DNA of 64,000 nt from Haliotis rubra (lineage: Eukaryota), in contig NW_025766967.1 in assembly GCF_003918875.1 (NCBI RefSeq), positions 434,001-498,000 of the forward strand, given 5' to 3'. This document shows positions 9,011 to 60,230 of this stretch, piece after piece; within the stretch, counting starts at the first letter, position 1; every line of letters starts with the position of its first letter. The translations under genes and the position numbers were made by a program. The notes under the pieces were generated by a model. That model ran no database searches and was not told where the DNA came from. It saw only the letters and a program-made list of their open reading frames with translations.

Positions 9011-11410
9011 AATGGATCTGATAAGTAAAATGAACCACAACAAACTTTTTAAAAAACAACAACAAACAAACCCAGAAATCTCCTGTAAATGTTGAGTTAG
9101 TTTTACGTAAACATGTGTTAGTCGGGTCAGTAAATATCCACATAATTGTCGATTCTGTTGTGCTCTCCCTGTGATGTCTGCACTCCCCACAAACAACCCA
9201 AACCGCCCCTTTTGGCACGCAAGCAACCTATCATCGTGGGGTCAAATCTGGGTTCGATCTCGTCAGTTTTCAAGGTTTGTCAGTACCATACCAGTGTTCC
9301 TCAGTTTCACCCAATTCTATACGTATGCCACTTGCTTCACTTCGGGCTTTCCTCCCCCGTTAAACCGTGATATAACTGACATATTGTTCCAAAGGTGTCC
9401 TCCCATTACGCAGACAGCCAGTTCGCAGACACCTTAAACAAACAACATTTACGGTTCAGTGAACAGATTATCTACTACCTGTTACCTACACAATATAATG
9501 GAATAGTCCAAATAAAAACGCAGGAACAACATGAAGCTATATTATTTATTTTGAAAGATGGACGAAAAGACAGTAACATGAATTTTTATTGCTGCAATAT
9601 AAAAACAGTTTATTTTCATAAACATTTCGGTTTAACCTTCTAGTCTAACGGGAGTCGGCATCATCATATTGAAAACATTAGCTTAGCTATTAGAAATCGC
9701 GACACTGTTGTATCATATAAATCAAATAAAGACAAATGTGAACCTAAATATTATTCATATGGAATAAATACGTTGTATGTTTTGCACACAATATTAAGAT
9801 ATATGACGAGTGCACTTAATTACGATTTATTCAGAATAAATATTTAAAATATGACACATCATGTCAATGTGGCCATGGATGTGAGAATGTTTTTCATTAC
9901 TTCCTTGAATGTCCATTGTACACTACTCAAAGACATAAACTGTTACAATCATTAGAAACGATTGTTAAAATTAGAACACTGATTTGTATTAATCGTATCT
10001 TACATGGCAATGCAGGTGTCTCATTTACTGCAAATCAGAATGTTTTCAAATATGTGCATGTCTATATCACTCCAACAAAACGTTTTCTCAGTTAACTTCT
10101 GTTGTACATATGCTATTATTGGGAGGGGACCTTTCTAACAATAAACACAATCAAACCTCTCAGTGACAAACCTGTTTTATATTCGATAGTAATTAATAGT
10201 AAAAACAATTTTGAGAAGAGAAATCATTTAGCATTTAAACACAACAAATTTCTATTTACCTACAATCAAACTTCTCAATAACAAACCTGTTTCAGGCTCA
10301 CCCTGCTCTACTCACTAGACAGTGGACTGTTCCATTATACCCATAGGTGTAACCCTAATTAACCTTCTAGTTCAGTGTCTGTCAATTGGGTGTCTGTGTG
10401 TCTGTCAAATGGGAGATAACCGTTCCAAAAGACGTTAAACGGAACCCACTCACTCACTCACGCTTGACTTGAAGCAGTGAACATGAAAGTGAACATGTGA
10501 CCATCGAACTTTTACATTATGCATCGTTGTTGATATATATCAGTATATTAAACTTTAAGATTGTCTGGTCCAGATTCAATTTTATTTACAGCTGGAACAT
10601 TGTTGCGTTAAACGACAATCAGGCAAATTAAATTCATAAGTAAAGACAACTTGTATACACTCCTCTTCAGTCATTTCACAGTCACTTGTTCAGACATACT
10701 TTGGTTTGTTTGTGTTGCATTGGGTTTTTCGTCGGTCTTCTCGTCACATGTCTCCTGTTTTCGCTGTACCTACTCGTAACACATTAACATTACTAGCGTG
10801 GAACCTCACGTATAATCTGCATTGTACACCACAATGGGAAGTAAAAATGCGTAAATGTACGGGCACTCACGCGGGTGTTCTTAAAATGGAAAACAAGATC
10901 ACTACCAAGAAGTTCTCTTTTAAGAAGAACGAGGTCACTTAACCTGAACAAGGTCGATCTACCTCTGTGTATGTATAGTGTGCGGTACCAGTATATCATC
11001 TACAGTCCTCCTATTAACATGGAAAACACTTGCATCCCTAAACAAGGGCGACGCCACAGAGTTGTGACGACAATATGTATACTGACTCTTGTCATCTCAG
11101 CAGCGCTGAACATATCGATGATTGTTCTTGTTTTGTTGCATACATTTTCTCGCAGTCACCCTGTAATCACAGCCGATACAAAGCGCATTGGGCAGGGATC
11201 TTTGTGCATTCCGTGTGAAACGCATAGGAGAGAGAAACGTACCTTGGCTCACTCCGAGTATGCCGATGTGGTACTTCTTCAGGGACGTCGGATATGCTGT
11301 CTGAGACATGCTAAGGGTCTAACACATCTTGTGTAACTTGTCAGTAAAGTGGTACATGTAACTAAAGACATATTTCGTATTAATAAACAGCCAACTATCA
11401 GCTGAATTTA

Positions 11411-11655
11411 GTGATTGAGTTTAGTTTTATACCACACTCAGCAATATTCCAGATATATGGCGGCGGTCAGTAAATAATCAAGTCTTGACCAGACAATCCA
11501 GTGATCAACAGCACGAGCATCGATCTGTTGAATTGGAAACCGATGACATGTGTCAACCAAGTTGGCGAGCCTGACCACACGATCCCGTTAGACGCCTCTT
11601 ACGACAAGCATGGGTTACTGAAGATCAATATTCTAACCCGGACCTTCACGGGTCA
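11411..11655 (-). mobile_element. SINE family B
   Basis: Full ~245 bp copy; shares the 3' tail (gctggaatattgct..aaaactaaactca) with family A. Confidence 0.85.
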
Positions 11656-12142
11656 ATGGAAGTTAATAAGAAAGGCTTAACATGTTGGATTTTGACAAAT
11701 CTGAGTATGACTCGTCCTAATACCCGTTGAACGGTTTTTGGAGTATGTGATAGTTTCCGAGCTTAAAGTGTGAGGAATGCACAAGTGATTCAGGTATCAG
11801 TTTTTGAAATTTACTACTGGAAAATCAAATGAGCCTGACAATAAAGCGGACAACTCCAGACCTGTAATTACGGTGAACTGGAGAATCGAGTAAATTGCTG
11901 TGAAAACCATTCTGGTATTTCAGTCTCTAACAAGAGCATTGTCTGATACATTGTCATCAAGTGTATATTTGATTAATATTTAATAATTAATTATGTTTGC
12001 AAACTGACCATCCAAATTGTCCACTTGTGTTAAAAATAGGTTTTTATTCTGTAAATAGAATAGTCGTGTATAATAAAAGACCAAAGTGATGCATTATTCT
12101 TTATCACACTGGTGAATCCCACCATTATAAAGATATAAAGAT

Positions 12143-12340
12143 ACTGGATCCCACTCAAGAATCGATGGATCCCACTCTGAAAAATCGTGGATCCCACTCA
12201 AGATCATTCGATCACTCCTCTGACACACCTCTTCACAGAGAATTGGCACCTAATCTGTGATATCGTGGATCCCACTCAAGATCATTCGATCACTCCTCTG
12301 ACAAAACTCTTCACAGAGAATTGGCACCGACTCTATGATA
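12143..12340. repeat. Local tandem duplication (~78 bp x2 plus partial copies)
   Basis: atcgtggatcccactcaagatcattcgatcactcctctgaca..ctcttcacagagaattggcacc occurs at 12184 and 12262. Confidence 0.85.
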
Positions 12341-14047
12341 CGTACGCTATTAACATAGCCAGAGTGTTGCTATAATACGACCAAAACGTACATTATATTC
12401 TCTGCAATGAACCTTGGCAATCTATTTTTAAATATATAGCTTAACCCAAATGAGTCCATGCTCTTGATTATTCTAATACCGTTTAAATGTTCTGATACAT
12501 GTGTGTTTATTGCAGATGTCATGCTACTTCTTTGAACACAGAGAACTGAACTCTGACTCGGGCAGGGCACGTCACATTCATCAAGGCGACGTCAAAGCTT
12601 CAGCCCACGTGTTCCTTAATCAGGTCACATTTAAGGGTACGTCTTGCAATGGTTATTTTAAGCATTATCTAGTTCTGTACAAATCGTGTTTCACTGGAGC
12701 AAAACACAAGTTTTGATATTGTTTGTTTTCATGTCGGTTAATACACAATTGCATGGAGTCCCTCTCTGTTGAACACATGTTTGTAAACGAAGCACTGAAA
12801 AATCAGTGATGGTACCAGGTGTTCGCATAAAGGGTAGCATCCGCTTGTGAAATATTTGAAATATTTATCCCAAATATTAGAACTCGAAAATAAGGACAAA
12901 TATGTTTATCGTTATTCTAATAATGATTGTCATCATCAATTACAAATAAAATGCGTCGTATGTTTGCAGGAACCCATCTTGTGTGGAGCACAAAGCCCGG
13001 TTATGGAAGTGCCCATGTCACTGGTGCCATAATATTGGAAGACAACTCATTATTTATCCCAAAAGACGGTTTATTTTTCGTATATTCCTCTCTGACGTTT
13101 ATTGTACGTCGTGGTGACATCACAAAGATGCATGTGACATATTCGTTATTACGTCACAATCCATGTTATTCTCCTGTGCCAGACATTTTACTACTAACAA
13201 ACGTTAGTCTTCTTCATGGAGCGGGGCTGTTCACGGCAATAACTTTAGAGGAAAGCTTTTCCTTGAGGCGGTGAGATGTTCTGTCCGTCTTCGTGTTAAA
13301 CTATTCTTATGTTTACCCGTTCGGTTTTCTTCATCAAACTATTTTGATGTTCGCCAGCTTTAGCACAAAACCTTAGAACGAAACTCTGTTCAAATATTTA
13401 CAGTAATTATATATCATGTAAAACAATAAAAATAAAAGAAATGTTAGAATACATCCAGCTGTTGATTTATGTGACAAATAGAAAAAGACTGTTTGTTTTG
13501 GGTGGGTGAGGGTTGGGGTGTGTGGGTGGGAGGGGTGGGGTTTTTGTGGGTGGGAATGGTGGTGGTAGTGTGGTGGTTGTGAAACGGGGTTTAAGGACGT
13601 GTGACACGTGTACTGATGTGCGGATTCAGACAACAAACTTCCATGTGCAAGCTGTTGCTGGTGCTGCCGTTATTGCAGACCATGCTGTCCCCGTTTTGCG
13701 AACACCTGGTGTCACTACACAATTTCAGCGATCCGATCATGTCATTTTCACTGATGTTTTGCCTTTTACCTGCAGTGGAATCTGTTTTAACGTATAATCG
13801 ACGATTCGTATTAAACAGTAATACATGTTACTGTCAGCATCGATATTCCATTAATATAATATTAATAACATACCAATATTTATCACACACAAAATTACAT
13901 TTCAACATTTTACAGTGATTAATCTATAATAACGGATGGAAGGTGTAATACTGTATAGGGCTGTTGCAGCACATTAAGGCCGTAAGACTCGTCTGAAGCT
14001 GCTTCAAAATGTATTTCAGCTTTAGGAAATTACGGTAATAACGAAGT

Positions 14048-14425
14048 CAAGGGGACCCTAAGTCAAGGGAATCAAAGTGGACCACTGCCTCAAGGGGATC
14101 ACTGACTCAAGGGGACCAGTAACCCAAGGGGACCACTGACTTATGGGAACCAGTAACTCAAGGGGACCACTGCCTCAAGGGGATCACTGACTCAAGGGGA
14201 CCAATAACTCAAGGAGACCACTGACTCAAGGGGACCAATAACTCAAGGGGACCACTAACTCATTGGGACCATTAACACAAGGGGACCACTAATCCAAGGG
14301 GACCACAAACTCAATGGGACCACTAACCCAAGGGGACCACTAACACAAGGGAACCAATAACTCAAGGGGACCACTGACTCAAGGGGACCAATAACTCAAG
14401 GGGACCACTAACTCAAAGGGAGCAC
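14048..14425. repeat. 17-bp minisatellite (AGGGGACCACTGACTCA)n, ~22 units
   Basis: Direct reading of repeated units. Confidence 0.92.
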
Positions 14426-14600
14426 TATCTGTAAATTGCTTGTCGCTGTTATTATAACTTTAATTCAAAGTCGTGAGAACAGTACATGTTTTTGCCCTCA
14501 ATAATGTTTATTTAATTAAAATATATTATATGTGTGAGGATATTTTACAAAAACACAAGAACGCGATAGGTCCTGGCCGACGTGGTGCTGTAGGTAGAGT

Positions 14601-14752
14601 GAGTGAGTGAGTTGGTTTTTACGCCGCAGTTAGCAAAATCCCTGCGAGAGACACCAGAAATGGTCTTCATACATTGTACCCATGTGGTGAATCGAACCCG
14701 GGCCTTCTGCGTGGCGAGTGAACGTTTTAACCACTAGGCTATCCCCGCCCCG
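14601..14752 (-). mobile_element. SINE family A (internally deleted)
   Basis: gagtgagtgagtt..tacgccgc..gaatcgaacccggg..ccactaggcta. Confidence 0.8.
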
Positions 14753-14889
14753 CAGTAGCACTAAGTGGACAGTGGTGTTACGTTGAGTCAATGTCACCTC
14801 CGCTCACCTCTCACAAAAGGTTTTCTGATTATCGATTCTTCCTGAATTATGCAGTACCAGAACAAGAACTATTTTCCATTCACACCTGA

Positions 14890-15048
14890 CTGACTGACTG
14901 AGTTTGGTTTTACGCCGCTTTTAGCAATATTCCAGCATCATCACGGCGGGGGACACCGGAAATGGGCTTCACACAATGTACCCATGTGGGGATTCGGGTC
15001 TTCGGCGTGACGAGCCAACGCTTTAACCACTAGGCTACCCCACCGCTC
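14890..15048 (-). mobile_element. SINE family A with 14-bp TSD
   Basis: ccattcacacctga at 14876-14889 and 15049-15062. Confidence 0.9.
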
Positions 15049-16754: not shown

Positions 16755-18339
16755 TTATGTCCCTACGAAATACAAGCCAAAGAAATTGGATGGTGGAAAC
16801 CGGTAGATATACGACATGTTGCTGACGTGTACAAACACGTGATCATCTTGTCTCAGCCTGACTGTAGCCGACAGGAAGCTTGTGACGAATCTTTCACTCA
16901 CTTCCGGCATCGTCTTCTTGGCCAAAAGGATTACAGTGCTGCCAAGGTTTGGCAGGTGTGTGTTGGTCCTTCTGATGGTGTGGATGATGTTTTCAGGACG
17001 TCGCCGTCGTTGGTGGGTCTTGAACGTGAAGAAGGAGTAGATGCAGTATAGGCCTGACTTTGTTACCCGCAGTGTGTTGTTGTCAGAGTAGATGTCGTTG
17101 CTTCTGTAGGCGGAACCGTAACCATATTCCTCGGTCCATTCCAAAGAAGGTTCTGGATGGAATTAAAATTGGTTAACGTCCCGTTAACTAAACTTCACAC
17201 ATGTGTGACGTCAATGCATTTGGTGTTCTTAGTGTACTATCAGTACAGGGAAGGAACCAAAAATGCCAATTGAATTTAATGTTCAAAGTCTAATACAAAA
17301 CTAAATTTACTTCTATGTTAGCTAACATATGTACAACATACCCTGGTTATAATGCCATCGTTTGTCCAGGAGGAAATATGGCATTATATCCAGGGTGACA
17401 ATATAACCAGGTAGGACCTCAGCAGGATGGTTGGTGGTACGACATTACCACCTGCATCATTGTGTCCTGCAATGATCCTTAACGGACTGGATAATCCCAG
17501 CGTCTTGGGGCTGCAGGTGACTTCTTGTTGTAGGTGTTCACCAGTGCCACTAATTAGAACAGTCCAACATCCACTGTCCAGCGACCTCCTAATCCCTTAT
17601 CCAAACATTCAGATATGGGGGAAAGAGAGGTTAAACCGGCAGGAAGTGTATAGTCACATGTGTTGAATACTTAAATCTTTAATGAGTTTGTTCAATGAAT
17701 CTGGGTCATATCAATTAACCAATTAAGTTATGTATACTACACGCAGACAGTGTAATTGGCATAATAACCAGGGAAAATTTCTTTTGTTCCAAAAACAATT
17801 GGCATTGTATCCAGGGTGGCATTATAACCAGGGTGCACTGTAGTGGCTTGAATACTGGACACCATGATCGTCACCACTTCTCGCCAACTAAACGTGCATA
17901 CTCATATTTATCACGATGAGGTTCGGTGTTACAGAGAAATGGCCGTGTTTCACTACAAGAAACGTTTATTCTGATCTCGGTTTCCAGGAATTTACCGTTT
18001 CATACAGTGCCTTCTTGAACGAATATTCGTGCGGGTTCAAGGCCCAAACCAGATCAAACTCCCGACTGGTAATATTACGTGTGTTCTTATGTATCTACGC
18101 GAGGCAATATATTACAAAAATACGTCATCCCTGTCATACACAAATAATACAGATCAACGCATCCTGAAATTATTACCCCACGTTATTACTCTGAACTCTG
18201 TATACGTACTTGCTGCAGTCAATGCGTCACTTTCAAGATACACATGGGCTCCAGTGTAAATACTTTGAATGACTGTGGAGTCATTGTTGTTGGTGTCTTG
18301 GTTCCTGGTCCTGGTTGTATCAAAGAATCGGTCAGCGAA
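16755..18339 (-). CDS. Duplicate exons 2 and 3 of TNF-2 (18339-18210, 17152-16755); no dedicated exon 1
   Basis: Open frames and intact splice sites; complete TNF homology domain; three amino-acid differences from the copy at 21411-19852. Confidence 0.75.
17334..17840. mobile_element. TA-flanked MITE (Tc1/mariner/pogo type) in TNF intron; second copy 20431-20909
   Basis: Imperfect TIR CAGTGCACCCTGGTTATAATGCCA, TA at both ends. Confidence 0.75.
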
Positions 18340-18632
18340 CTGAAATGTTATAAAAAAAAGAACGTTCGTACCAATTTGATCTGTTTCCTGTTGTTGGTGC
18401 TTTGGTTCCTGTTGTCATGGAAATAGTCTGTTGAATTATTATTTTATTTGACTTGTGTGGAAAGATCACATTCATATTCGAACTGTAATATTGACTCTTC
18501 TAAATACAGGTCATCTGCTGATCATCATAAACTGAAATAAAATACCTCATAAATTTACTGAAAGCTGTTTCAGACATCCTAAAGCAAAACAAAGTACTCA
18601 AAGGTTGTTTTTTTCAGGCATCAGCATAAGTA

Positions 18633-18780
18633 GGTGGGTATGTTTTACATATTTAGCAATATTCCAGCAATATGACGGCGGGCAACACCAGAAACGGGCT
18701 TCACGCATTGTGGTTAATCGAATGCGGGTCTACGGCGTGACGAGCCAACGCTGTAACCCTTAGCCTACCCCACCATCCAG
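18633..18780 (-). mobile_element. SINE family A, diverged; duplicated at 21706-21854
   Basis: TSD tcagcataagta on both sides. Confidence 0.8.
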
Positions 18781-19851
18781 TCAGCATAAGTAAAGTTCGT
18801 GGCACTCCTGAATTGACCAGACTGGAATAATCGAACAGTTATCTATTAGTCATGCTAGCCAACTTCGATGTTACAAAATCCAATAGCAGGCTACCTATGT
18901 TTTCCAGCCCTCCTACATTCTACTTACAGATCTCCTAAGACCTACTCCCCTTATGAAATCAAATCACCAATAAAACCAGTTGGGTTTAAAACATTATTAA
19001 CATTACTTAAGGCACTGGTCAATTTTCGGGGTGGACGGAATAAATATACGTTCAAGTATCGAATACAATGCTTCTTTGTAGAACGTTTGACCCTATGGTA
19101 TTACATGGATATAACACATTGGCCACCAATAAAAATCATCAATCACAAACATATTCAAGTCGAGAGTATTCAGCGCCCTCTTTATCCGGTATAATCAAGG
19201 CAGATCACTCCTGTTCAGGATCTGGTAGAGAAATGTCTATATGATACGTCTTACTCAGAGGCACCACAAACAAGACACCCAGGAGCCACATCTCCTCCGA
19301 AAAGATCACACATTACAAATTAAGAACACAACATTAACAATGAAAACAGAATCAACCATGAAAGCGAAGATTATAAAAATCCACAAACTTGATACAAGTT
19401 TCTTCCATGTGTCTACCATGCACGGTCGTCAGCACAACATCGGTGTAATTAAACCAATTACAGATTATGAGTCGTCGGTACACATAAATAAATACATTGA
19501 AGTAGCTGCTGACTGTTTCAATGGGGAATACTAAGACACGAAATAGTCAAATCTGAAGGACTTTCATTACGAATTATAGAACTGGGCTGAAGCAGTTACA
19601 AGGAGACTTTGAAGTCAAAGGAGCTAATTTTAATTATACAAATTTTGATTTCATTGGTTAAATTTCTGTAAACTTTATATTCACCGCACATTATAGCAGT
19701 TTTATACAACAATGGCATTTTGGAGGTTTGAATCTTCAGATCAACCTTACCAGTAGTGGTTTTGTACACCAGATCGAAGTGCTTTGGGCGATCTTCCTAC
19801 CAAATAGACGCCAAAGAAATTAGAAGGAGGAAATGGGTAAGAATACGCTCT

Positions 19852-22800
19852 TTATGTCCCTACGAAATACAAGCCAAAGAAATTGGATGGTGGAAACCGG
19901 TAGATATACGACATGTTGCTGACGTGTACAAACACGTGATCATCTTGTCTCAGCCTGACTGTAGCCGACAGGAAGCTTGTGACGAATCTTTCACTCACTT
20001 CCGGCATCGTCTTCTTGGCCAAAAGGATTACAGTGCTGCCAAGGTTTGGCAGGTGTGTGTTGGTCCTTCTGATGGTGTGGATGATGTTTTCAGGACGTCG
20101 CCGTCGTTGGTGGGTCTTGAACGTGAAGAAGGAGTAGATGCAGTATAGGCCTGACTTTGTTACCCGCAGTGTGTTGTTGTCAGAGTAGATGTCGCTGCTT
20201 CTGTAGGCGGAACCGTAACCATATTCCTCGGTCCATTCCAAAGAAGGTTCTGGGTGAAATTAAAATTTGTTAACGTCCCGTTAACTAAACTTCACACATG
20301 TGTGACGTCAATGCAGTTGGTGTTCTTAGTGTACTATCAGTACAGGGAAGGAACCAAACATGCCAATTGAATTTGATGTTCAAAGTCTAATACAAAACTA
20401 AATTTACTTCTATGTTAGCTAACATATGTACAGCATACCCTGGTTATAATGCCATCGTTTGTCCAGGAGGAAATATGGCATTATATCCAGGGTGACAATA
20501 TAACCAAATAGGACCTCAACAGGGTGGTTGGTGTTACGGCATTTCCACCTGCATCATTGTGTCCTGCAATGATCCTTAACGGACTGGATAATCCCAGCGT
20601 CTTGGGGCTGCAGGTGACTTCTTGTTGTAGGTGTTCACTAGTGCCACAAATTATAACATAACAGACCATAGTCCAACATCCACAGTCCAGTGACCTCCTA
20701 ATCCCTTATCCAAACATTCAGATGTCGGGGAAAGTGAGGTTAAACCGGCAGGAAGTGTATAGTCACATGTGTTGAATACTTAAATCTTTAATGAGTTTGC
20801 TCAATCAATCTGGGTCATATCAATTAACCAATTAAGGTATGTTCCAAAAACAATTGGCATTGTATCCAGGGTGGCATTATAACCAGGGCATTATAACCAG
20901 GGTGCACTGTAGTGGCTTGAATAATGGACACCATGATCGTCACCACTTCTCGTCAAACTAAACGTGCATACTCATATTTATCACGATAAGGTTCGGTGTT
21001 ACAGAGAAATGGCTGTGTTTCACTACAAGAAACGTTTATTGTGACCTCGGTTTCCAGGAATATACCGTTTCATACAGTCCGTTCTTGAACGAATATTCGT
21101 GCTGCGGGTTCAAACCCCAAACCAGATCAAATTCCCGACTGGTAAAATTACGTGTGTTCTTATGTATCTACGCGAGGCAATACATACAAAACTAAGTCAT
21201 CCCAGGCATACAAACATAATGCAGATCAACGCATCCTGAAATTATTACCCCACGTTATTACTCTGAACTCTGTATACGTACTTGCTGCAGTCAATGCGGC
21301 ACTTTCAAGATACACATGGGCTCCAGTGTAAATACTTTGTACGACTGTGGAGTCATTGTTGTTGGTGTCTTGGTTCCTGGTCCGGGTTGTATCAAAGAAT
21401 CGGTCAGCGAACTGAAATGTTATAAGAAAAAGAACGTTCGTATCAATTTGATCTGTTTCCTGTTGTTGGTGCCTTGGTTCCTGTTGTCATGGAAATAGTT
21501 AGTTGAATTATAATTTTATTTGACTTGTGTGGAAAGATCACATTCATATTCGAACTGTAATATTGACTCTTCTAAATACAGGTCATCTGCTGATCATCAT
21601 AAACTGAAATAAAATACCTCATAAATTTACTGAAAGCTGTTTCAGACATCCTAAAGCAAAACAAAGTACTCAAAGGTTTATTTTTTTCAGGCATCAGCAT
21701 AAGTAGGTGGGTATGTTTTTACATATTTAGCAATATTCCAGCAATATGACGGCGGGCAACACCAGAAACGGGCTTCACGCATTGTGGTTAATCGAATGCG
21801 GGTCTACGGCGTGACGAGCCAACGCTGTAACCCTTAGCCTACCCCACCATCCAGTCAGCATAAGTAAAGTTCGTGGCACTCCTGAATTGACCAGACTGGA
21901 ATAATCGAACAGTTATCTATTAGTCATGCTAGCCAACTTCGATGTTACAAAAATCCAATAGCAGGCTACCTATGTTTTCCAGCCCTCCTACATTCCTACT
22001 TACAGATCTCCTAAGACCTACTCCCCTTATGAAATCAAATCACCAATAAAACCAGTTGGGTTTAAAACATTATTACTACTCATTGTTATGTTGATTTATG
22101 CTGCTCTGTCAATGTGGAAAACACGTAATTATGAAAAACATAATTGTCATAATTAGTCATAAGACTGCAGTCACGCCTCCGCGTGACTCAACTCGTGACA
22201 GTCTCCCATTGTTAACCTGTCCCATAAACCAGATGCTATGTAATCGTACATCCGAGTTAAATACACTTTAAACAGACTTACGATTCGCTTGGGATATCAC
22301 CTATAAATAATATATACAGCTCAGCATGACATCTAAGTGCTACACCACTATGTGTTTACTGTCTGCTCGGCCCTAATTTAAGAACCAACGAATCCATTGT
22401 CAGTGAAACATTAAAACACACAAGTCTCGAAACCAGATCGTAAATCATGTTATCTGCAAGTCTGTACTGGTAATCTTGTAGGGTAACAGGTTGGGACTAT
22501 CCCACAACCATGGTACATCCTAGTATCGCCGAATTATGGTCTTTATAGACAGAATCATTATTACCAATATTGCTCATATCGGCACCAATAATATCACCTA
22601 AATCGTTATCATGATATAAACCTATGTTTTCTAACACATTTATTAAGCATGAAGCAATTAAGACTCAAAAGAGAGTAAAAATAAACTCACAATCGCCAAT
22701 AGCCGCTGAAGCCCTTCAGCATTTTCCAGACAGCAGACGGAAGTTGAATCAGTCACGTGATGCACGGTTATACCGTGCAAGTCGGTCCTCCTGTGATTGC

Positions 22801-23155
22801 CCGGATGAACACCGACAGAAAAGCAGTCCATGCATATTGTGCCCTTGTCTACTGCAGACACAAGAGCGTCAGTAGACAGACTGCCACTGTCAGTGTCGTG
22901 GATATCAACGTGTTTCCATAGGTAAAACGTCAACACAATGTTCAGTAACAACGATAACAAAACTGCAGATAACACGATGCATTGCTTGATCGTGCAGGAC
23001 GTCCTCGGGTGGGGTGACGACTGTGTGGGATGAAGGCCGTCCACCTTTGTGTAACTGTAGACAGACCTTCTAGGTGTTGTCGGGAGATCAAAGGTCACTG
23101 TAGACACTTTGAATTTCCCGTTGGGCTGTCCCAGCAACAAGGACAGGGCACCCAT
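19852..23155 (-). CDS. TNF-superfamily ligand TNF-2, 330 aa; exons 23155-22691, 21411-21282, 20249-19852
   Basis: Type II TM helix IVLSAVLLSLLLNIVLTFYLW, GAHVYL, LEW, LRVTKSGLYCIYS, TSFLSATVRLRQDDHVFV, SNFFGLY. GT/AG sites, phases 0 and 1, 993 nt in total. Confidence 0.93.
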
Positions 23156-23236: not shown

Positions 23237-23926
23237 ATGGCGGGCCTATCTTTCATGTGTTGTTACGTTTTGCACTAAAATAGACTCTTCCTGCTTGTAT
23301 AATCTATCAATAAAGGTCAACGCCTTTACATTTCTTTGAGAGGCATTTTACAAGAAGTGAGCTGAAGGAAAACCAAGTTCTTTACATTAGCATTGCTGTT
23401 TTTAGAAACATTCACACACTGTTGTGCAGTCACAAGCCGAATCGATTTCTAGACGCCTTTATATTGTTGTCAATGGCTGACGGGTCACGATGGCCTGATG
23501 AAACGAGCTTGTGAGATCGGATCAGGATACTCCAGTCCAGGCGGTTAGCCCAATCTTGAGTGCTGATCTAAATAGATCCTTAAGCATAAATCATCCAGAT
23601 AAGACGTTTTCCTGTTGATATCATTTCGAAACGATTAATCAGCAAAGCTTCACACAATGGCGACTAGGTAAAGACCTGGATTTAGTGTGCATGGTTATGT
23701 ACGCTGCCTAAACGTGTTAGTAATCAGCAGATTTAAAGAGGAATATTTCGGCCAACAACGTTAGATAACATCTCACTCCTACATATAGAAACGAGACAAT
23801 AGTTTATATACAGATAAAATTTGCACTTAAAGAGACCTTTGTTGCTTCCATGAGTTGATATAAAATGTTCAGCTTATGTCCGTCTATCTATCCAGCCATC
23901 TAATATAAACTGTCGTCTGATCAAGG

Positions 23927-24243
23927 TGAGGCGATGTGAAATTGGGTTTAACGTCGTGCTTGAGAATATTTCGCTCATATGACGACGTGCATGCGTGTGT
24001 ATGTGTATGTGCGGCTGCTTGTACTAGCCCAGACTTAAGCTGGTTTCATAGTGCTAGCCCACTGAGATACCATGCCGCAGTGAAGCATGAATACCCCGCT
24101 CAGACACATTATACTGACGCAGAGCCGACCAGTCCTTGATGTGCCCATTAATGCCGAGCGCCAGGCAGGGACCAACAAGTACCATATTTTAACGTCTTTT
24201 GGTATGACGCGGTCGGGGTTCGAACCCGCGACCTTCCGCTCTC
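23927..24243 (-). mobile_element. tRNA-derived SINE family C (Meta-domain-like), 13-bp TSD
   Basis: cgtctgatcaagg at 23914-23926 and 24244-24256; box B GGTTCGAACCC; central gtcataccaaaagacg..aaaatatggtac..ccctgcctggcgctcggcat; (CACCT)n tail. Confidence 0.88.
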
Positions 24244-24599
24244 CGTCTGATCAAGGAGGAACGACTGTTTGATGTTGCCGGGTACCCCTAGCTGGTAGAT
24301 ATAATGTTGAAACCAGTTTTAAAACAAACGACGATTTATGCCAATTGCTTGAATTGTCTCCATGTTTTCTGTGAAGAATTTGTTCAGGTTTTACCCTCTG
24401 GACGTCGGTATATCTTACGCCACTGTTTGTGTATTCTTCGCAACGCCGCTTCACCTCTGTTGCGGGGTATATATGTCTTAGTTGAACACCCTGCAGCGAT
24501 GTCATGAAAAGTATCAAATTGTCACTGAAAAGAGAGGTTAAAACGTTTAATACGAAAACTCTTTCTCTTTTACTGCTTGTGTCCTTCCCTTTGTACAAT

Positions 24600-24851
24600 T
24601 GACCCGTGAAGATCCGGGGTAGAACAGGTCTTCATCAACCCATGCTTGCCACAAAAGGCGACTATGCTTAATGTCGTAAGAGGCCATTTACGGGATCAGG
24701 TGGTCAGGCTCGCTGACTTGGTTGACACGTCATCGGTTCCCACTTGCGCAGATCGGTGCTCATGCTGTTGATCACTGGATTGTCTGGTCAGGACTCGATT
24801 ATATAGCTGTAATATTGCTGAATGCGGCGTAAAACTAAGCTCACTCACTCA
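24600..24851 (+). mobile_element. SINE family B
   Basis: gacccgtgaagatccggg.. to (ACTC)n tail; ccctttgta on both flanks. Confidence 0.85.
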
Positions 24852-25400
24852 CCCTTTGTATAATTATGCGACTCGTTTACATTCAATATATATTGAACAT
24901 CTGGTGATCTGTTTAGATGTACATCTACACCAGCTACAACTATTACATACATCAATCACTGTACATACACGTATATATAACACGTGTTAGTGCATCACAT
25001 GTAGAAACATGCACTTCGGTATTCAGAGAGTTAGCTCCCTTTAACAGGCTGTTGAGTCTCAGCAACCACTTGATCGTTAATTTGATGTTTGCCGGTCTGA
25101 CTCACACATGACAGTCAGATGATGTCACGTTGTTGGATGGGAAAACCGGAGTCAAAAGTCAAACACGCTCACACTGGGTACATCGGCGTAAAAAGTGTAA
25201 AAGGGTTATTTGTGATGCATACACACAATCTAACACTGTGAAATCACATGAGTGCAGGTTGCATGTAAATACTCTGTCTTGTATTATCCCAAGCTCCGGC
25301 TTGCCTTTCTCGGGATTGAGGTCTGGGTCAGGAACGCTATCTCTAACACATTTATCTATGTCTCACTCGAGCCCAAGAGAGATGTCGTTTGTTATGTCAA

Positions 25401-25638
25401 GGCGAGGTGAGGTGAAATTGGGTTTAACCTCGTGCTTGAGAATATTTCGCCCATATGACGACGTGCATGCGTGTGTATGTGTATGTGCGGCTGCTTGTAC
25501 CAGCCCAGACTTAAGCTGGTTTTATAGTGCTAGCCCACTGAGATACCACGCCGCAGTGAAGCATGAATACCCCACTCAGACACATTATACTGACTCCAAG
25601 CCGACCAGTCATTGTTGTACGCATTTATGCCGAGCGCT
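25401..25638 (-). mobile_element. SINE family C, 5'-truncated
   Basis: Matches 23927-24160. Confidence 0.85.
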
Positions 25639-26663
25639 TGTTATTACAAAGAGTTATATAATGTCAATTAGCTTGATCACAGACGGCAAATGCGGAGGGG
25701 AATATGTGGTAGCTATGTGTAACAGGAATTATATTTTCTACCAACCATTCGTTTAGACGGAAACCCTCATTAGTATTATTTGCAAACACAAACAAATATA
25801 CAATACATGTCAAACTACCTTTCAGTTCCTTTACATCTGACGGTTTCAACAATAACACCTCTAAAGCGCCAACAATGGGTACTGACAATAACAAACAATG
25901 CTTCCGTGTGCATTGGGATCACTCACTCACAAAAACTCTCAGCTAGAAAACTATAATGCATCATAGTGTCTGTATACATAATGAACAATAAAGAATAGCG
26001 TCATGAATAATTTGGGGATGTTTTTATTTGAAGTTGTCTTCCTCCGGATCCACAACTTCTTTATTACAATTCTTTCGACCATAAGCAAACAAGCGATCAA
26101 GCAAGCTGCGTGATGGTATGTACACTGAAGCGTCGCATGTATTTTAATAAAGAACTTGTATTTCCCTTGTTGATCACACCAACTTCTAAATGCCACTCAA
26201 AGAAATTTCAAGTAATCAAACAAATGGTAAACAACGTGAAAGGACATGCCATAGAGGCAAGGTCACATGTATACAGACATTGACAGTCAATATTTCTTCC
26301 TTCTGACAATTGTAAATATATGTGTCGGTGCCATTGACACTCAATGCGTATAATCATTATGTTTATATAATCGCAGACAAACAGAATTTGTCCGGTTGTT
26401 GATGCGTATAGACTGATGTACCAATCAACAGCAAGAGTCTTCCGGAAACTCCCGCCATTGGTTTTGTCCTTGGCTTCATCTGTCAAAGATTCTTAACTTA
26501 AGTTAGCTATGACATATTGCCAATGACCTACTCCTATAATTTCCATCTGTTTTGCCATTTACTCAGTGGAATCTAGTTCGACAGGTCACCGAGGCAGATT
26601 ACTCTCTGGCAGTGCAATTTGCTTTTGTGTGAAGCCAGTTACACCATTTTATGGTGACACAAT

Positions 26664-43397: not shown

Positions 43398-44925
43398 TAA
43401 CTCACTCGCCTGCCTACCAACTCACACAATCATCCACTCACTCACTCGCCTGTCTACCAACTCACACAATCATAGACTCACCGAGTCACTCACTCGCCTG
43501 CCTACCAACTCACACAACCATTCACTCAACCAGTCACTCACTCACTCGCCTGCCTACCAACTCACACAACTATCCACTCAACAAGTCACACACTCGCCTG
43601 CCTACCAACTCACACAACCATTCACTCACCGAGTCACTCACTCGTCTGCCTACCAACTCACACAACCATTCACTCAACCAGTCACTCACTCGCCTGCCTA
43701 CCAACTCACACAATCATAGACTCACCGAGTCACTCACTCACCTGCCTACCAACTCACACAACCATCCACTCAACCAGTCACTCACTCGCCTGACTACCAA
43801 CTCACAAAACCATTCACTCAACCAGTCACTCACTCGCCTGACTACCAACTCACACAACCATTCACTCAACCAGTCACTCCCTCGCCTGACTACCAACTCA
43901 CACAACCATTCACTCAACCAGTCACTGACTCGCTTGCCTACCAACTGATACAATCATAGACTCACCGATTCACTCACTCGCCTGCCTACCAACTCACACA
44001 ACCATTCACTCAACAAGCCACTCACTCAATCACCTGCCTACCAACTCACACAATCATAGACTCATCCAGTCACTCACTCGCCTGCCTACCAACTCACACA
44101 ACCATTCACTCAACCAGTCACTCACTCGTCTGCCTACCAACTCACACAATCATAGACTCACCGATTCACTCACTCGTCTGCCTACCAACTCACACAATCA
44201 TAGACTCACTGTGTCACTCACTCGTCTGCCTACCAACTCACACAATCATCCACTCAACTATTCACTCACTCACCTGCCTACCAACTCACACAATCATCCA
44301 CTCAACCAGTCACTCACTCCCCTGCTTACCAACTCACACATTCATAGACTCACAGAGTCACTCACTCACCTGCCTACCAACTCACACAATCATCCACTCA
44401 ACCAGTCACTCACTCACCTGCCTACTAAATCACACAATCATCCACTCAACCACTCACCGAATCACCTGCCTACCAACTCACACAATCATAGACTCAACTA
44501 TTGACTCACTCGTCTGCCTACCAACTCACACAATCATAGACTCACCGAGTCACTCACTCCTCTGCCTACCAACTCACACAATCATAGACTCACCGAGTCA
44601 CTCACTCGTCTGCCTACCAACTCACACAATCATGCACTCACCGAGTCACTCAAACACATGCCTACCAACTCACACAATCATAGTCTCACCGATTCACTCA
44701 CTCGTCTGCCTACCAACTCACACAATCATCCACTCACCGAGTCACTCAATCACCTGCCTACCCACTCAAACAACCATCAACTCACTCACTCCTTCCCTCG
44801 CCTACTCACTCATTCACTCAACTATCCACGAACCCACTCACTCTCTCATCCACCTGACCTCCCAACTGTTCACCCACTCATTCTCTCTTTCTCACTCACC
44901 CACCCAACGACCCACTCACTCACAT
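43398..44925. repeat. 48-bp minisatellite (~28 units) decaying into (CTCA)n-like sequence
   Basis: ctcactcgcctgcctaccaactcacacaaccattcactcaaccagtca repeated. Confidence 0.93.
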
Positions 44926-45564: not shown

Positions 45565-48500
45565 TTACATTTTTATAACACCAAAATAATTTGAAAATCT
45601 CCTTTTCTCAACTAAATCATAATAATTGTTCGACACCACCACATGGAGGCGATCTTGTTTGCGGAGCTTCACAATGGCGGACAGGAAGGACGTTTGCTGC
45701 GGAGTTACTGTCAACCGGAAGGACGTTTTAGACATGAGTATGGATTTCTCTCCGAGGCCAGGGAGGTTAGGGTTCTGTCGCCGTATCATGTGCAGGAAGG
45801 GTGTGTCTGAGGATGTTGGCAACGTGGTGAAGGTGATGTGTGAGTACACCAGGTACAGACCTGCTGCTGCCACGACGACTTTGTCCCCATCACATTCGAC
45901 GTTGGAACAGAAAGACGTATTGTAGGGGTCGCTCGTCGTCCATGTTGGCGGTGAATCTGTACAAACGAGTACAATATTAACAAAGCACAGTTCATGTACT
46001 GATGTATCACAACAATATTTATGTGTTATACAGAGAACCTGTAACTGTAATCACCTCAAATGATATAAACACTTAAAAAAGTAACGATATCCCATTTTCC
46101 ATATAATTTTTAATATATATATACTCACAGAAACGAATAAGGGAACACATGAAAGTACAAGTGTTCTTTTATTTATTTCCAGAATTTCACTCACTGTGTT
46201 ATTCATTCCTCGTGAAGAAACATGGACAAGAATAAAGGAACATTTGTACTTTCATGTGTTCCCGTATTCGTTTCCATGAATATATGTTTGACATTTTGTG
46301 AACACCAAACTCGGTAATACTCCATCAAAATGTCGGCGATCAGTATAGAACAGGTTGAACCAGACAGTCAAGGAAATTATCTGCATCAATCTACACAACT
46401 GTAATACAACTATATGCTTCCACCATGTGAACGAGCTGAAAAACAAAAGTACTGCCGGAAATAGAAAAAAAACTGTTTTTTCACATTTATATCTACATGT
46501 AGTTAATATGTGAAAGTGTGAAATATCTGTTAAACTAAGTTCGGCCTAACTACAGTCTCAGTGGGAGGGAGATAGGAAACGTAAAAGAAGGATTTTACTG
46601 AGGAGAGCTTAGTGCAGAAATGAGCAATGCAGTTTTTTTCTAAGTCCAATGCGACTTATTCAGAACAGACCATGGCTTTATACAAATTAGTGTGCGATGA
46701 TATTGTATTATAAAGGACACTTTTAAACGATCATTTTGAAATTAGACTTAGCTTCATTATAAACGATAGCAGACGTAAACAATAATAACTTTAATACTGA
46801 AATTATTAAGGATGTAGCTACCATGGCGTTTCACTATCAATATAAAAAGAAACAGGTAGGAGGGGTCGTCTCAAAAGCAAAACAAGACTTGGCGTTTGCG
46901 TGTCATTTTAAGCCCGAGTAGGCGTTTCTGCCACACAGTTACTCTGATTGAATGTATTTTGGACTGAATAGGGTGATTCTTCGATTCTAATGGAGGTACT
47001 TATGCCATGCAATACTCCACACAGCAAAGGGGCAATATTCAAAGCTCGCACATACAACACAACATTATAACCCCGGATAGCCCAAGCTGCCTGTTAGGAG
47101 CCAGAAGGTTATAGTCATATAACTTACCCCACCGGGTACCCATTTTCTGCTGGGTGAACAGAGGCAATTTTGAACAAACTCACTTGCCTAAGGTGAGACC
47201 ACGTGTATCACATGTGTTTCGTTGTGGGGCAGGACTGAAGTCCTAGAAACTCCCATGAGTCAAGCTGCCAAACACATGGCCAATAAGAAAGCCGGAATTT
47301 GTCTATGCGGCATAAAACACCATCCACCACCATGTCAGTGTTGTAATACGGAAGCAAATGTGCATGCATATGCAAATCATTACCTCTGTCTGGCACCAGA
47401 TATCGGTGAGCCCACGTCGACTCCCTGGGACGACTCCATATCTCTTCCCGCAACCCTTTAAGGAGGTCACCCGGCTCCCTGCCTAAAATGACAAAAGCCA
47501 TTGTTCGTTTATCGAAATTGTTCAGACAAATCGTTGTTTTGGTAGTACTACCTATACGTTTGTAACTGCTTCGTGTATTTGTTGTAAAATCATGGGAATT
47601 ATTATTTTGAATGAAATATAATTTATTCGTTTAGTGCCGTGAAGTTCTGTGTTAATTAAGCGAGTGAGTGAGTTTACTTTTACGCCACTTTTACGCCGCC
47701 GTGGGTGAGTGTTACATATAAAACAAAGATCCTTAAATACATGAATGAACGAGTGAATAAATGCACGCACCTGTGGACCTTCTGTAGTATTCGTCACTGA
47801 TTATCTGAAACGAAATAAAAACACATGAAGACCTCAAACGGCATGTCTTTAAAGGTTGATTTGGATTGGTTTGTTTGTTGTTAACGCTGCACTGTGTGCA
47901 ATTAATCGAGTCTGGACCGGACAATCCAGTGATCAACATTATGAGCATCGATCAACGCAATTGGGGTACGATGACATGTAAAACATCTAATCTCACTACT
48001 CTGCTCTGAGAAGTTAATTCAAACCCAGCGTATAATCTGAACATGGGAATAAACACACGATGTCTTTAGTTGTAGTCATTTCAGCTTTTTGTCTTTGTTA
48101 TATGGGGATTCGAACCTTGATTAACTCCTGCCACACCAGGGAACATGTCTCAGATACGCAAGTTCCTGTTCCTTGGGCTGCAGTGTTACTCGAGATNNNN
48201 NNNNNNNNNNNNNNNNNNNNNNNNNNNNNNNNNNNNNNNNNNNNNNNNNNNNNNNNNNNNNNNNNNNNNNNNNNNNNNNNNNNNNNNNNNNNNNNNNNNN
48301 NNNNNNNNNNNNNNNNNNNNNNNNNNNNNNNNNNNNNNNNNNNNNNNNNNNNNNNNNNNNNNNNNNNNNNNNNNNNNNNNNNNNNNNNNNNNNNNNNNNN
48401 NNNNNNNNNNNNNNNNNNNNNNNNNNNNNNNNNNNNNNNNNNNNNNNNNNNNNNNNNNNNNNNNNNNNNNNNNNNNNNNNNNNNNNNNNNNNNNNNNNNN

Positions 48501-49170
48501 NNNNNNNNNNNNNNNNNNNNNNNNNNNNNNACTACTATTGCAACTACAACAATTACTACTACTACTGCTACTACTACCACCACCAATGCTACTACTATCA
48601 CCAATGCTACTGTACTACAACTACTACTCCTACTGTTACTACCACAGCTACTACTACTACTGTAACTTCTGTAACTACTACGACTGTAACTATTACAACT
48701 AACTACTCCTACTACTACTACTACTACCATCACCAACGCTACTACAAGTACTACTTCTAAATGCACCGTCTATATTACTAGTATTTAAGTACCTTTTGGA
48801 ATAACGTTGTGACGTCATTCTTCTGTCTCTGACAACACAGCGCATGTCCCGATGGCAGTCTTATGACGTCATAAAGCGTATCCTTGGATTCGACCAGCGG
48901 ACCAAGTTGATCACAGGTGAGACATATTTGATCAGCAGCCGCCTGCTTTCGATTCGACAGAGCGGGTAAACCCTCAGTTCTGGGGTGATGTTCTCGCGGT
49001 TTCATAAACTCATGGACAGCCACGACGACAATCAGCACAACATTGGCTGTCAGCGATAATCCGATAATCGCATACAACAGCACCCCCGGACGACGTCGGC
49101 CTTGATGGGGCGGTGGAGTTGGTGACGTTGCTGGCTCAATGGATAGGAAGGTGGACTCGGGTTCGGACAT
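45565..49170 (-). CDS. TNF-superfamily ligand TNF-5, 300 aa; exons 49170-48793, 47804-47771, 47482-47384, 45956-45565
   Basis: TM VLLYAIIGLSLTANVVLIVVVAV, CLTC..CC, 34-nt micro-exon IISDEYYRRST, WAHRYL, PTW, VVAAAGLYLVYSHITF, TSFLSAIVKLRKQDRLHV, SNYFGVIKM. Phases 0,1,1. Intron 1 contains an assembly gap. Confidence 0.88.
48197..48530. other. Assembly gap (N run)
   Basis: Ns. Confidence 0.99.
48531..48757. repeat. (ACT)n degenerate trinucleotide microsatellite
   Basis: Direct reading. Confidence 0.92.
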
Positions 49171-49377: not shown

Positions 49378-49437
49378 CGGAATACCCATTACCTCACCGC
49401 GGATTCCCTGAAGTTACGCTTGCTACGGGGAATTCCC
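49378..49437. promoter_or_regulatory. Cluster of kappaB-like sites upstream of TNF-5
   Basis: GGGGAATTCCC at 49427-49437 plus weaker cGGAATACCC at 49378 and gcGGATTCCC at 49399. Confidence 0.6.
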
Positions 49438-50254: not shown

Positions 50255-50748
50255 AAATATATATTCTTTGTTCCTCCAAAGGAGAGTTACAAGAGTAATA
50301 ATAATGACAAATTTACATTATAAAAGCATGCAATGTTATGATTACTTGTAGCTTTAGAAACGGTGATTATAATATTCCTTTTCGATAACAGTTACTCTTT
50401 GGAATTGATGTAAGCCTTTGATTGCTACTTCAGAAAATGTGAGTTCAATGTCCGGATCTGGCACAGGAGGATGGCAGGACAGGAGACATCATACCAATTC
50501 CACATCAGGCTCCTGACCTCCACATAACACCTGTCCACTATGTTGCACCAGAGATTGTCTCTCTGTTCTTCTGTCTCAGGACACATGCACACAGTGTGCA
50601 CAAGTAGGTCTGTGTAACTGTCCCTGCACAGTCTGCACACACCCTGGACCTGGACATTTCCTGGCCTCCACATCTGGATCACAAAGGCTGCAGCTTGCTT
50701 TATACCAGGAACTCTCTTCGCTGTTACCCACGCTTCGGTGATGGTGGT

Positions 50749-50784
<36 letters not shown>

Positions 50785-51740
50785 GGGGGGGAATTACTGG
50801 ATGAATCAGTGGGAAGTGTCTTAGGTCTGGGTCAGTCTCTATTCGTCTTTTCCATATATCGAGTTCTCTCCCTTTGATAGCATCCTTCACAATTCTCTTC
50901 CAGGTCGATCTACTGGGGAATGTTCCATGGCTGCTGAAGGTGTTAAGGAAAGCCCCAAGGTTGCACCTCTCTGCAATCCGTTTGATGTCTGGAACAAAGC
51001 CGAGTGAGGTTTCTGTACACATGTACTTAGACAGAGCCAGTCTTGTTGAAAAGATGCGCCTGGGGACTAAGTCTGTTTTGCCTTTACATAGGTTTCCAAG
51101 GAACAGTAGCTTTCGTTTGTCTATTTCAGACTCCAGTGATGTCCAGCCGAGCAGAGCGTTACAGATATCTGTTCTCGTTGACCGAGGTAGGCCCTGTGCT
51201 ATCTTGAGGGCAGCTCTCTGGGAACGTTCCGATGCCAACATTTGTGCTTTACTCAGGTTGTAACACAGTTCACACCCAAAAAGGGATCTTTGGGACACAG
51301 ACAGATTTAATGATTTTAGAGCTGACTAAAGGGTTTAATCCTCTGATATGTACTCCTGATTTAAGCAGTGACATTGTTGTTGATCGCATCTTCGAGCATA
51401 CATCGATGGTTCTGTTCAAAGAGTTGTATTCTGCTGAAAGGGTTATCCCAACGTGTTCTATTTCCCTGGTGATTGGGATTCCTTGACCGTATAACTTTAT
51501 GTCCAGGTTAGAGGAGCTGACTGGTCCAAAGGTTAGAACTCTGCTTTTTGCTGGAGAAAATGTGAATCTCCACTGTCCACTGTATGCTTCGCACATAGAT
51601 ACCATGTCTTGTAGATGGGATCTGACTAGTGATATCAAGGTTGTATCGTCTGCCTGGGTTGGAGCTGTTACACTGATGTCCATTATGATTGATCCTTTCC
51701 CACTCTTTCTCAGAAGTTCATCTGATATACTTCAATTGAA
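50255..51740 (-). mobile_element. 5'-truncated LINE (RT C-terminal half plus CCHC zinc knuckle; RTE-X-like by inference)
   Basis: PTQADDTTLI, WRFTFSPAKS, HVGI, LFGCEL, CRLC..HTVCMC; 3' end tttggaggaacaaagaatatatat; frameshifts and an internal (CA)n insertion. Confidence 0.85.
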
Positions 51741-51745
51741 TGTAA

Positions 51746-54324: not shown

Positions 54325-54501
54325 GTGAGTGTGTGAGTGAGTGAGTGAGTTCAGTTTTACGCCGCTTTTAACAATATTCCAGCGATATCACGGCAGGGGA
54401 CACCAAATATAGGCTTCCCACATTGTACTCATGTGGGGAATCGAACCCGGGTCTTCGGCGTGACGAGCGAACGCTTCAACCACTAGGCCACCCCGCCGCC
54501 C
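54325..54501 (-). mobile_element. SINE family A
   Basis: Family match. Confidence 0.85.
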
Positions 54502-59682: not shown

Positions 59683-59726
<44 letters not shown>

Positions 59727-60230
59727 GTGCGCGCGTGTGCATGTATGAGTGTGTTCATGTGTGTGTTTATGTTTGTGCGTGTAAATCCTGCCCAGCACAA
59801 TACGACCAATTTAAATGTTTGCAGGTTTGCCACAAACACACAAAGGCAGTTCAATTGATCAGTCGCAAAAAAAGCACAGGAAAACATAGTTTCCAACATA
59901 AACGCACACCTGTTGAAATGTTGGAGAAAGCTCATCCATTTCTTTCAGGCAACAGAACGTATCTTTCTCTACTCTCCCCACACTGTAGAGCGTGTCGTTG
60001 GATTCGATCCTGGGCCCAAGATAATCGCAAACAAAACACACAGCGCCGGTTTCAGCAACAGGGTTGAGTAGAGGAACATCTGTATCCTTCTTCAACACTA
60101 CGAAGATTACCAGTGTCACAACAGTTACATTGACAACAAGGGATGCTACCACGCTGATACGGAGAAATATGGGTCCACACACGGGCACATCAGCTCTGTT
60201 GGATTTTATGAACTCCGTGGATTCCGACAT
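56726..60230 (-). CDS. TNF-superfamily ligand TNF-6, 274 aa; exons 60230-59910, 59500-59473, 59088-58999, 57111-56726
   Basis: TM ISVVASLVVNVTVVTLVIFVVL, CFVC..CC, 28-nt micro-exon MARAIYKGK, GAHLYL, LPW, GVKYQNGHIHIPSKGRYHVYSHVTY, TSFLSAILDMRKNDRVAV, TFFGVRKL. Phases 0,1,1. The exon 3 donor (gtccgt) is weak. Confidence 0.9.
57800..58432. repeat. 32-bp minisatellite built from two related 16-bp subunits, in TNF-6 intron 3
   Basis: ctatactcctaacggt + acattgtcctaactgt repeated. Confidence 0.92.
58534..58872 (-). mobile_element. SINE family C, near full length
   Basis: tRNA-like head at the right end, (CACCT)n tail, tcatttta on both flanks. Confidence 0.88.
59655..59782. repeat. Compound (AT)n(GT)n microsatellite
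   Basis: Direct reading. Confidence 0.9.

Follow-up and report, generated by a model that had tools for sequence, protein, structure and literature searches.

A four-cysteine stalk module in TNF ligands of abalone and other molluscs and brachiopods

We analyzed a window of 64,000 nt from the genome of the blacklip abalone Haliotis rubra (NW_025766967.1, 434,001-498,000; all positions below are those of the window), which contains six tandem genes for type II ligands of the TNF superfamily, one on the + strand and five on the - strand. Between the transmembrane segment and the TNF homology domain (THD), each of them encodes a CxxC pair, a CC pair and a predicted amphipathic helix. Sequence comparison indicates that this module is an extracellular mini-domain of about 55-60 residues and a constant element in a single large family of mollusc and brachiopod type II ligands, and structure prediction suggests that it folds on its own. 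Taking sequence, models and analogy together, we judge the chances about evenly balanced that lophotrochozoan TNF ligands possess in it a hitherto undescribed stalk domain, stapled by disulfides and serving as a trimer pedestal; we are surer of the fold than of the role. The type II transmembrane plus THD layout was already known, and what is new is TNF ligands with a second conserved, predicted folded domain.

A six-frame regular expression scan of the window for C-x2-C-x(20-35)-CC recovered six motifs, starting at 11205 (+) and at 22834, 28297, 36856, 48924 and 60038 (-). The spacings between CxxC and CC are 26, 29, 28, 29, 25 and 24 residues for ligands 1 to 6, identical to those given in a preliminary description of the region. 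Three further matches were unrelated background located outside any gene. Each of the six motifs lies in a long exon 1 open reading frame (ORF), 18-30 residues past a hydrophobic membrane segment, and the topology agrees with the extracellular placement that had been proposed. The last exons encode the THD and match Pfam TNF (PF00229) with 41.6-70.3 bits, compared to a gathering cut-off of 23. In the six-way alignment of the module the only invariant columns are the four cysteines, identity being otherwise about 21%, and the THD exons have no cysteine in common, as had been remarked before. A GT donor is found exactly 13 codons past the CC, in phase 0, in all six ligands; this exon end had also been described, and RefSeq models and a transcript contig concur with it. 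The sequence data support the view that the module plus helix is a real, selectively maintained unit whose cysteines are its most conserved feature. The module plus helix that the preliminary description recognized is not limited to the six genes, being a hallmark of the family across Mollusca and Brachiopoda. The roles suggested there, namely metal binding, trimer cross-linking, redox switching or shedding control, are conjectural.

Taxonomic reach, conservation and intron position

Run against 1.84 billion representative proteins, a profile built from the six THD exons (profile A2) gave 802 matches at E <= 0.001. Among the 150 best of these, 45 contain C-x2-C-x(20-36)-CC upstream of the THD. 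The named module-bearing organisms are gastropods (four species of Haliotis, Gigantopelta and Lottia), bivalves (Sinanodonta, Potamilus, Pecten, Argopecten, Ylistrum, Ruditapes, Pinctada and Saccostrea) and one brachiopod, Lingula anatina. The module is also present in two H. rubra ligands (P0167 and P0168) encoded on another scaffold. Nearly all of these proteins are labelled "uncharacterized", "THD domain-containing" or "TNFSF6/10/15-like", and PF00229 is their only recorded Pfam domain. A word-index protein search with ligand 4 exon 1 gave no match, an alignment query gave 12 matches only, and a word-index search with the Lingula protein P0068 returned the query alone; the taxon range was not widened by these searches. 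An ESM-Atlas feature search gave no usable match.

The distribution of the module was then counted over the 59 matches whose THD is complete and which, if they lack the module, extend at least 90 residues upstream of the THD. It is present in 33 of them. Twenty-two of those that lack it form a single clade (SH-aLRT, the Shimodaira-Hasegawa-like approximate likelihood ratio test, 96), whose one named member is lungfish TNFSF15 and whose other members have FasL- or LIGHT-like N-termini. No degenerate or weak copy of the module was detected in vertebrate-type matches (FasL-, LIGHT- and TL1A-like), even with the HMMER filters off. The remaining four proteins without it fall within groups that bear the module. 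Of these four, P0083 and P0040 are clearly truncated copies of proteins that have it, and P0052 and P0150 lack an explanation. A ligand of the clam Mercenaria mercenaria (P0088, from L008) also has no module. Its stalk is a cysteine-free coiled coil, its exon 1 ends in phase 1 and its intron phases differ (1, 1), and molluscs therefore keep at least two types of stalk.

Several variants were observed among the module-bearing proteins. The Lottia gigantea protein P0047 (525 aa) contains two copies of the module, at residues 42-102 and 301-361, and is either an annotation fusion of two tandem ligand genes or a true double ligand. Bivalve members such as P0123, P0131, P0111 and P0124 possess an extra C-x(9-12)-C pair in the linker past the helix, and oyster and pearl-oyster members have a fifth cysteine inside the module instead, these being subfamily-specific additions to the framework.

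In a full-length alignment of 50 proteins, the invariant columns beyond the start methionine are the four cysteines and five THD residues. A hidden Markov model (HMM) built for the module gives 41-68 bits for full-length sequences outside its training set and finds 80 module stretches in the collected proteins, with the four cysteines kept in all except cut gene models. Besides the cysteines, hydrophobic core positions are seen at C1-1, C1+1, C2+3 (Leu in 30 of 50), at two Leu and one Val in the middle strands and at CC-1, where C1 and C2 denote the first and second cysteine. The hydrophobic face of the helix comprises CC+7, +10, +11, +13 and +14. Other favoured residues are Gly at C2+4 (27 of 50), Pro at C1+2 (21 of 50) and Asn at CC+3 (24 of 50). 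Between Haliotis orthologues or near-paralogues the identity of the module (0.65-0.86) is comparable to that of the THD (0.67-0.85), and in the lineage of ligand 5 the module is the better conserved of the two. The spacer and linker that flank the module are less conserved in most of these pairs.

The members have the layout expected of type II proteins, in which a single hydrophobic segment precedes the THD and a signal peptide is absent, the orientation being taken from the family. The best 19-residue Kyte-Doolittle window reaches 1.9-3.5 in 53 of 53 members and lies 12-41 residues before the first cysteine. Median distances place the module 27 residues past the membrane and 43 ahead of the "AH" in strand A of the THD. 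Pfam TNF matches all 50 aligned relatives, and profile matches of the THDs in the PDB include FasL, TRAIL, TL1A, LIGHT, RANKL, lymphotoxin-alpha, TNF and CD40L.

To examine the exon structure outside abalone, annotated proteins of seven module genes were mapped onto their own genomic loci (one gene each in Lingula, Pecten, Gigantopelta and Saccostrea, three in Sinanodonta). In 7 of 7 the intron is in phase 0 and at the same position in the alignment. Exon 1 ends 13 codons after the CC in Lingula, Pecten, Gigantopelta and two of the Sinanodonta genes; in Saccostrea and the third Sinanodonta gene it ends 12 codons after the CC, and these two share the aligned position because of a one-residue alignment gap just past the CC. 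The usual layout elsewhere has four exons: exon 1, a small exon of 25-37 nt (phase 0 to 1), a second one of 96-117 nt (phase 1 to 1) and the THD exon. Abalone ligand 5 retains this layout, with small exons of 34 and 99 nt, and the two are fused in the other five abalone genes and in one Sinanodonta gene. The intron interrupts the hydrophobic face of the helix midway, between CC+13 and CC+14, so that exon and domain do not end together. The helix of 13 codons proposed in the preliminary description is thus part of the unit, but it runs on across the exon boundary.

Predicted fold and proposed role

AlphaFold2 was run as a monomer with the 50-sequence alignment, on the module alone and on a full-length protein. 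The isolated module (63 residues) was modelled with a mean pLDDT (predicted local distance difference test) of 79.9 as a strand (4-7), a turn (8-11), two strands (26-30 and 36-40) and a helix (44-62). The full-length model shows these elements again, at 107-110, 111-114, 129-133, 139-143 and, for the helix, 146-171. The fold prediction reaches a confident, not a high-accuracy, level. Structural comparisons of the module model gave a best E of 2.2 with Foldseek against the PDB and a best Z of 3.0 with VIA-align against 48,161 chains, and neither search returned a chemokine-like or a zinc-finger fold. The top match of an ESM-Atlas shape search was a cluster of mollusc THD proteins, i.e. the family itself.

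Sequence libraries gave a similar picture. Nothing above threshold was found in Pfam-A (2025) for the six exon-1 proteins, and for 50 full-length relatives TNF was the sole recurring family, three others matching one member each above E 0.001. Against PDB sequence profiles, profile A1 had a best E of 1.8 and profile A5 (module plus helix) had no match at E <= 10. The earlier impression that this is no named domain thus holds for Pfam-A 2025, PDB sequences and folds and the literature searched: the module is without a name, structure or description in the libraries searched, which is not proof of absence.

In the mechanism that we favour, a short strand would bear Cys1 and a turn Cys2; two more strands would follow, the last of them bearing Cys3 and Cys4, and then the amphipathic helix. 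In the secretory pathway the four invariant cysteines would form two intrachain disulfides. Vicinal cysteines seldom bond with each other, so that a link between the CxxC turn and the CC strand is probable. Such staples would make a rigid knob of each protomer, with the helix packed on the small sheet before extending toward the THD, and three knobs with their helices may build a pedestal beneath the THD trimer. The pedestal would fix the height and orientation of the head, aid assembly or stability of the trimer and leave any cleavable linker on the THD side. The stalk of TRAIL is reported to stabilise the trimer and to contain a cleavage region (aa 89-106), on the THD side (PMC6678900). A furin-type site past the helix was also considered as a general feature and discarded, since R/K-x-K/R-R occurs in 1 of 53 members only.

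Several points weigh against the pedestal. The pairing of the cysteines is one that we infer, and as no member among the 80 stretches has lost a cysteine pair, evolution gives no clue to it. The pLDDT of the module is only 59-77 inside the full-length model, and monomer models cannot show trimer packing. A proline is present within the 13-residue segment of ligand 6 and of its relative P0006, in which the helix may be shorter. Lastly, the literature searched on invertebrate and mollusc TNFs gives a transmembrane segment and a THD only, with no stalk domain, an absence there that is not proof.

An alternative that we hold to be doubtful is an interchain ring or knot, in which CxxC and CC bond between protomers or between trimers to give a covalent trimer or a higher oligomer. 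Cysteine motifs that flank trimeric helices are known from collagen III (CC) and from COMP and matrilin (CxxC), and the abalone ligands resemble these cystine knots in having the same two short motifs beside a putative oligomerising helix in a protein that its THD leads one to expect to be trimeric. The CC is followed, 4-5 residues later, by the start of an amphipathic helix with hydrophobics at i, i+3, i+4 and i+7, and some bivalve subfamilies have a fifth, unpaired cysteine in or just past the module. In the abalone module, however, both motifs occur together and are parted by a conserved beta-rich segment that folds in the monomer prediction. These 24-29 residues carry a conserved hydrophobic core, Gly and Pro, and are predicted as beta strands of a monomer rather than as a coiled coil, and the hydrophobic face of the helix covers only about two heptads.

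Somewhat less probable still is a protein-recognition knob, which instead of a structural pedestal would mainly offer a docking surface to a sheddase, to a cis partner or to the membrane-proximal part of small Grindelwald/BCMA-like receptors. The conservation of the module, close to that of the THD among Haliotis orthologues and higher in the ligand 5 lineage, would fit such a surface. Between paralogues, however, the surface positions outside the core are highly variable (entropy above 3 bits in most loop columns), and no partner is known.

Binding of one zinc ion by the four cysteines, as in a zinc knuckle or ribbon, appears improbable. The geometry of the CxxC is that of a knuckle, and like zinc knuckles, ribbons and ZZ fingers the module has a strand that ends in a CxxC turn and four cysteines within about 35 residues; that a TNF ligand can hold zinc is shown by TRAIL (PMC6678900). 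The Pfam matches that point this way, ZZ_ADA2 in one of the six ligands (E 0.0097, 16.5 bits) and zf-C2HC_3 (11.9 bits), are nevertheless weak and lie far under the gathering cut-offs of 27.5 and 24. The second pair is CC and not a knuckle, the module lies in an oxidising environment, secretory and extracellular, and no zinc-finger fold was matched; a zinc ribbon or ZZ finger was rejected accordingly.

We give slightly less credence again to a redox switch, where the CxxC would act as a dithiol at the N-terminus of a helix and a strained vicinal CC disulfide would toggle activity or release. C-hydrophobic-P-C, a frequent form of the first pair, recalls thioredoxin-type motifs. Pro is found at C1+2 in 21 of 50 proteins and Cys2 begins a short helical turn in the models, but most members do not conserve this proline, disulfides between adjacent cysteines are uncommon, and the strand-turn-strand-strand-helix unit matches no thioredoxin fold, nor any other. 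That the pattern has no function, being simply a legacy of the ancestor shared by six recent paralogues, can be dismissed: the genes are tandem duplicates, but they are about 21% identical in this segment with the cysteines kept in all, and neutral inheritance is excluded because the module and its intron span two phyla and conservation equals that of the THD.

Relation to known ligands and origin

The closest known counterpart of the stapled pedestal is the stalk of TRAIL (TNFSF10) and RANKL (TNFSF11), which occupies the same place between the transmembrane helix and the THD of a type II ligand; TRAIL is among the best PDB matches to the abalone THDs (E about 1e-28). In vertebrate TRAIL and RANKL this stalk contains two cysteines at a distance of 20-29 residues, ahead of an amphipathic helix whose hydrophobic spacing is similar (about +7, +10, +11 and +14). 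Vertebrate stalks are not known to bear the CxxC...CC four-cysteine signature, and the matched PDB chains begin beyond the stalk. Homology of these stalks with the module counts as a lead rather than a finding.

The collagen segment of EDA had been proposed earlier as an analogue, and for this there is no sequence basis, Gly-X-Y repeats being absent. In EDA, in adiponectin and other CTRPs and in collectins, the parts outside the head build or bundle trimers, some of them via cysteines. The module differs from the EDA collagen segment and from the N-terminal cysteines of adiponectin/CTRP and collectins in being predicted globular with a hydrophobic core, and in being membrane-proximal in a type II protein rather than at a free N-terminus. 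The described mollusc TNFs (AbTNF-alpha, CgTNF/MgTNF-3 and PmTNF) and Drosophila Eiger are likewise invertebrate type II ligands with a transmembrane segment and a THD. For the mollusc ones the literature gives these two parts only, but the oyster and pearl-oyster genera do have module-bearing members.

In the THD tree, which is unrooted, the vertebrate-type clade groups with one module-bearing group (Gigantopelta "TNFSF6/10-like" and a scallop protein); the remaining 30 module-bearing ligands stand opposite, and SH-aLRT is 97 for each side of this split. The position of the root decides between two histories, a single gain of the module in lophotrochozoans, or an older origin and a loss in the lineage of the vertebrate-type ligands. 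Because the deepest split of this unrooted tree has module-bearing ligands on either side, with the vertebrate-type clade beside one of them, we tentatively raise a further reading, to which we assign a low probability: the module would be the ancestral stalk domain of bilaterian TNFs, locking the trimer covalently or sterically and deciding the shedding site, and the two-cysteine-plus-helix stalks of TRAIL and RANKL would be its remnants.

TNF ligands are among the best-studied cytokines, yet their stalk has been treated as an unstructured spacer. Here a second domain, predicted to be folded, is conserved about as much as the receptor-binding head, in two phyla, in dozens of paralogues per genome and with a fixed intron. 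Four invariant cysteines in a predicted self-folding unit of about 60 residues provide an experimental handle on how these ligands are held, assembled and released. The module is also a marker for sorting the very large TNF repertoires of molluscs, with a possible link to the TRAIL and RANKL stalks. Should the ancestral reading be true, the poorly understood TNF stalk would gain a defined, testable structure; should the module be only a lineage-specific structural knob, it would still be a new domain family for domain databases.

Gene models and other features of the window

The last-exon acceptors are in phase 1 in all six ligands, so that a middle exon is required. Comparison of the paralogues revealed it: it lies between a phase-0 acceptor and a phase-1 donor and encodes the "GAH(L/V)" with which the THD begins. 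The spliced models are open frames of 269-330 residues.

Ligand 1, the only one on the + strand, has its module (CIPC-x26-CC) at 11205-11300 and the 13 codons up to 11339, with an intact donor (GTCAGT) at 11340; exon 2 (12516-12636) and the THD exon (12970-13274) follow. Codon 12 of the 13 is an in-frame TAA (11334-11336), where the intact 287-residue relative P0007 has 13 sense codons. A second in-frame stop at 13272-13274 in the THD exon removes the last 32 residues or so, and homology to the THD is recognisable beyond it. Because of these two stops, with homology continuing past the second, ligand 1 is a pseudogene; it sits in an otherwise intact array.

Exon 1 of ligand 2 spans 22691-23155 (-), with the module (CMDC-x29-CC) at 22834-22730 and the 13 codons at 22729-22691. 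Its end at 22691 is that of a transcript contig from public run X1 and of the RefSeq protein P0161 (LOC124282364 isoform X1), which maps exactly onto this gene with the identical exon-1 end. Exons 2-3 and most of the preceding intron are tandemly duplicated (16755-19100 and 19852-22100, -), with about 85-100% identity at the peptide level, the copies differing by 3 residues. The proximal copy comprises exon 2 (21411-21282) and a THD exon (20249-19852), and the distal, near-identical one 18339-18210 and 17152-16755. P0161 joins exon 1 to the distal copy, and the two look like mutually exclusive 3' cassettes.

For ligand 3 (-), exon 1 is located at 28157-28603 (module CTDC-x28-CC, 28297-28196; 13 codons, 28195-28157), exon 2 at 27614-27497 and the THD exon, which matches Pfam TNF, at 27061-26664. 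This gene is expressed: a contig of 1662 nt from X1 (record 6) splices 28157|27614 and 27497|27061, precisely as predicted. The contig (26026-28650) diverges by about 3-4% from the window, and its source is a different allele, population or close abalone relative. Transcript evidence comes from X1 only, as runs X5-X7 cross the donors unspliced and are genomic DNA.

Ligand 4 (-) consists of exon 1 at 36713-37150 (module CVLC-x29-CC, 36856-36752; 13 codons, 36751-36713), about 80% identical to the H. asinina protein P0003, exon 2 at 35249-35144 and a THD exon at 34630-34233 that matches Pfam TNF. Ligand 6 (-) has exon 1 at 59910-60230 (module CFVC-x24-CC, 60038-59949; 13 codons, 59948-59910), exon 2 at 59086-58999 and the THD exon, again with a Pfam TNF match, at 57111-56726.

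Exon 1 of ligand 5 (48793-49170, -) includes the module (CLTC-x25-CC) at 48924-48832 and the 13 codons at 48831-48793, and exons 2-4 are at 47804-47771, 47482-47384 and 45956-45565. A search for exon 2 through the "AH" motif did not locate it and a phase-aware scan was ambiguous; the exons were settled by mapping of the RefSeq protein XP_046574298.1 (P0004), which is encoded exactly by 49170-48793, 47804-47771, 47482-47384 and 45956-45568. Intron 1 (48792-47805) contains a gap of N at 48197-48530, upstream of exons 2-4. As the P0004 exons flank this gap and translate exactly, it touches neither them nor the module. An (ACT)n-like microsatellite (48531-48727) directly adjoins the gap and probably explains the break in the assembly.

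Repeats are found between the genes. A 48-nt tandem repeat (27.9 copies, 86% matches) occupies 43438-44785, between ligands 4 and 5; it is strongly strand-skewed, and the long ORFs that it yields, with much Thr, His, Ser and Leu, are spurious. Between ligands 5 and 6, the ORFs at 50425-51683 (-) have a sub-threshold match to RVT_1 (E 0.0036, 17.5 bits compared to a cut-off of 29.6) and probably belong to a decayed retroelement. The regions 23850-25650 and 27850-28050, intergenic and in intron 1 of ligand 3, reach a contig depth of 10^5-10^6 in the DNA runs X5-X7 and are high-copy interspersed repeats.

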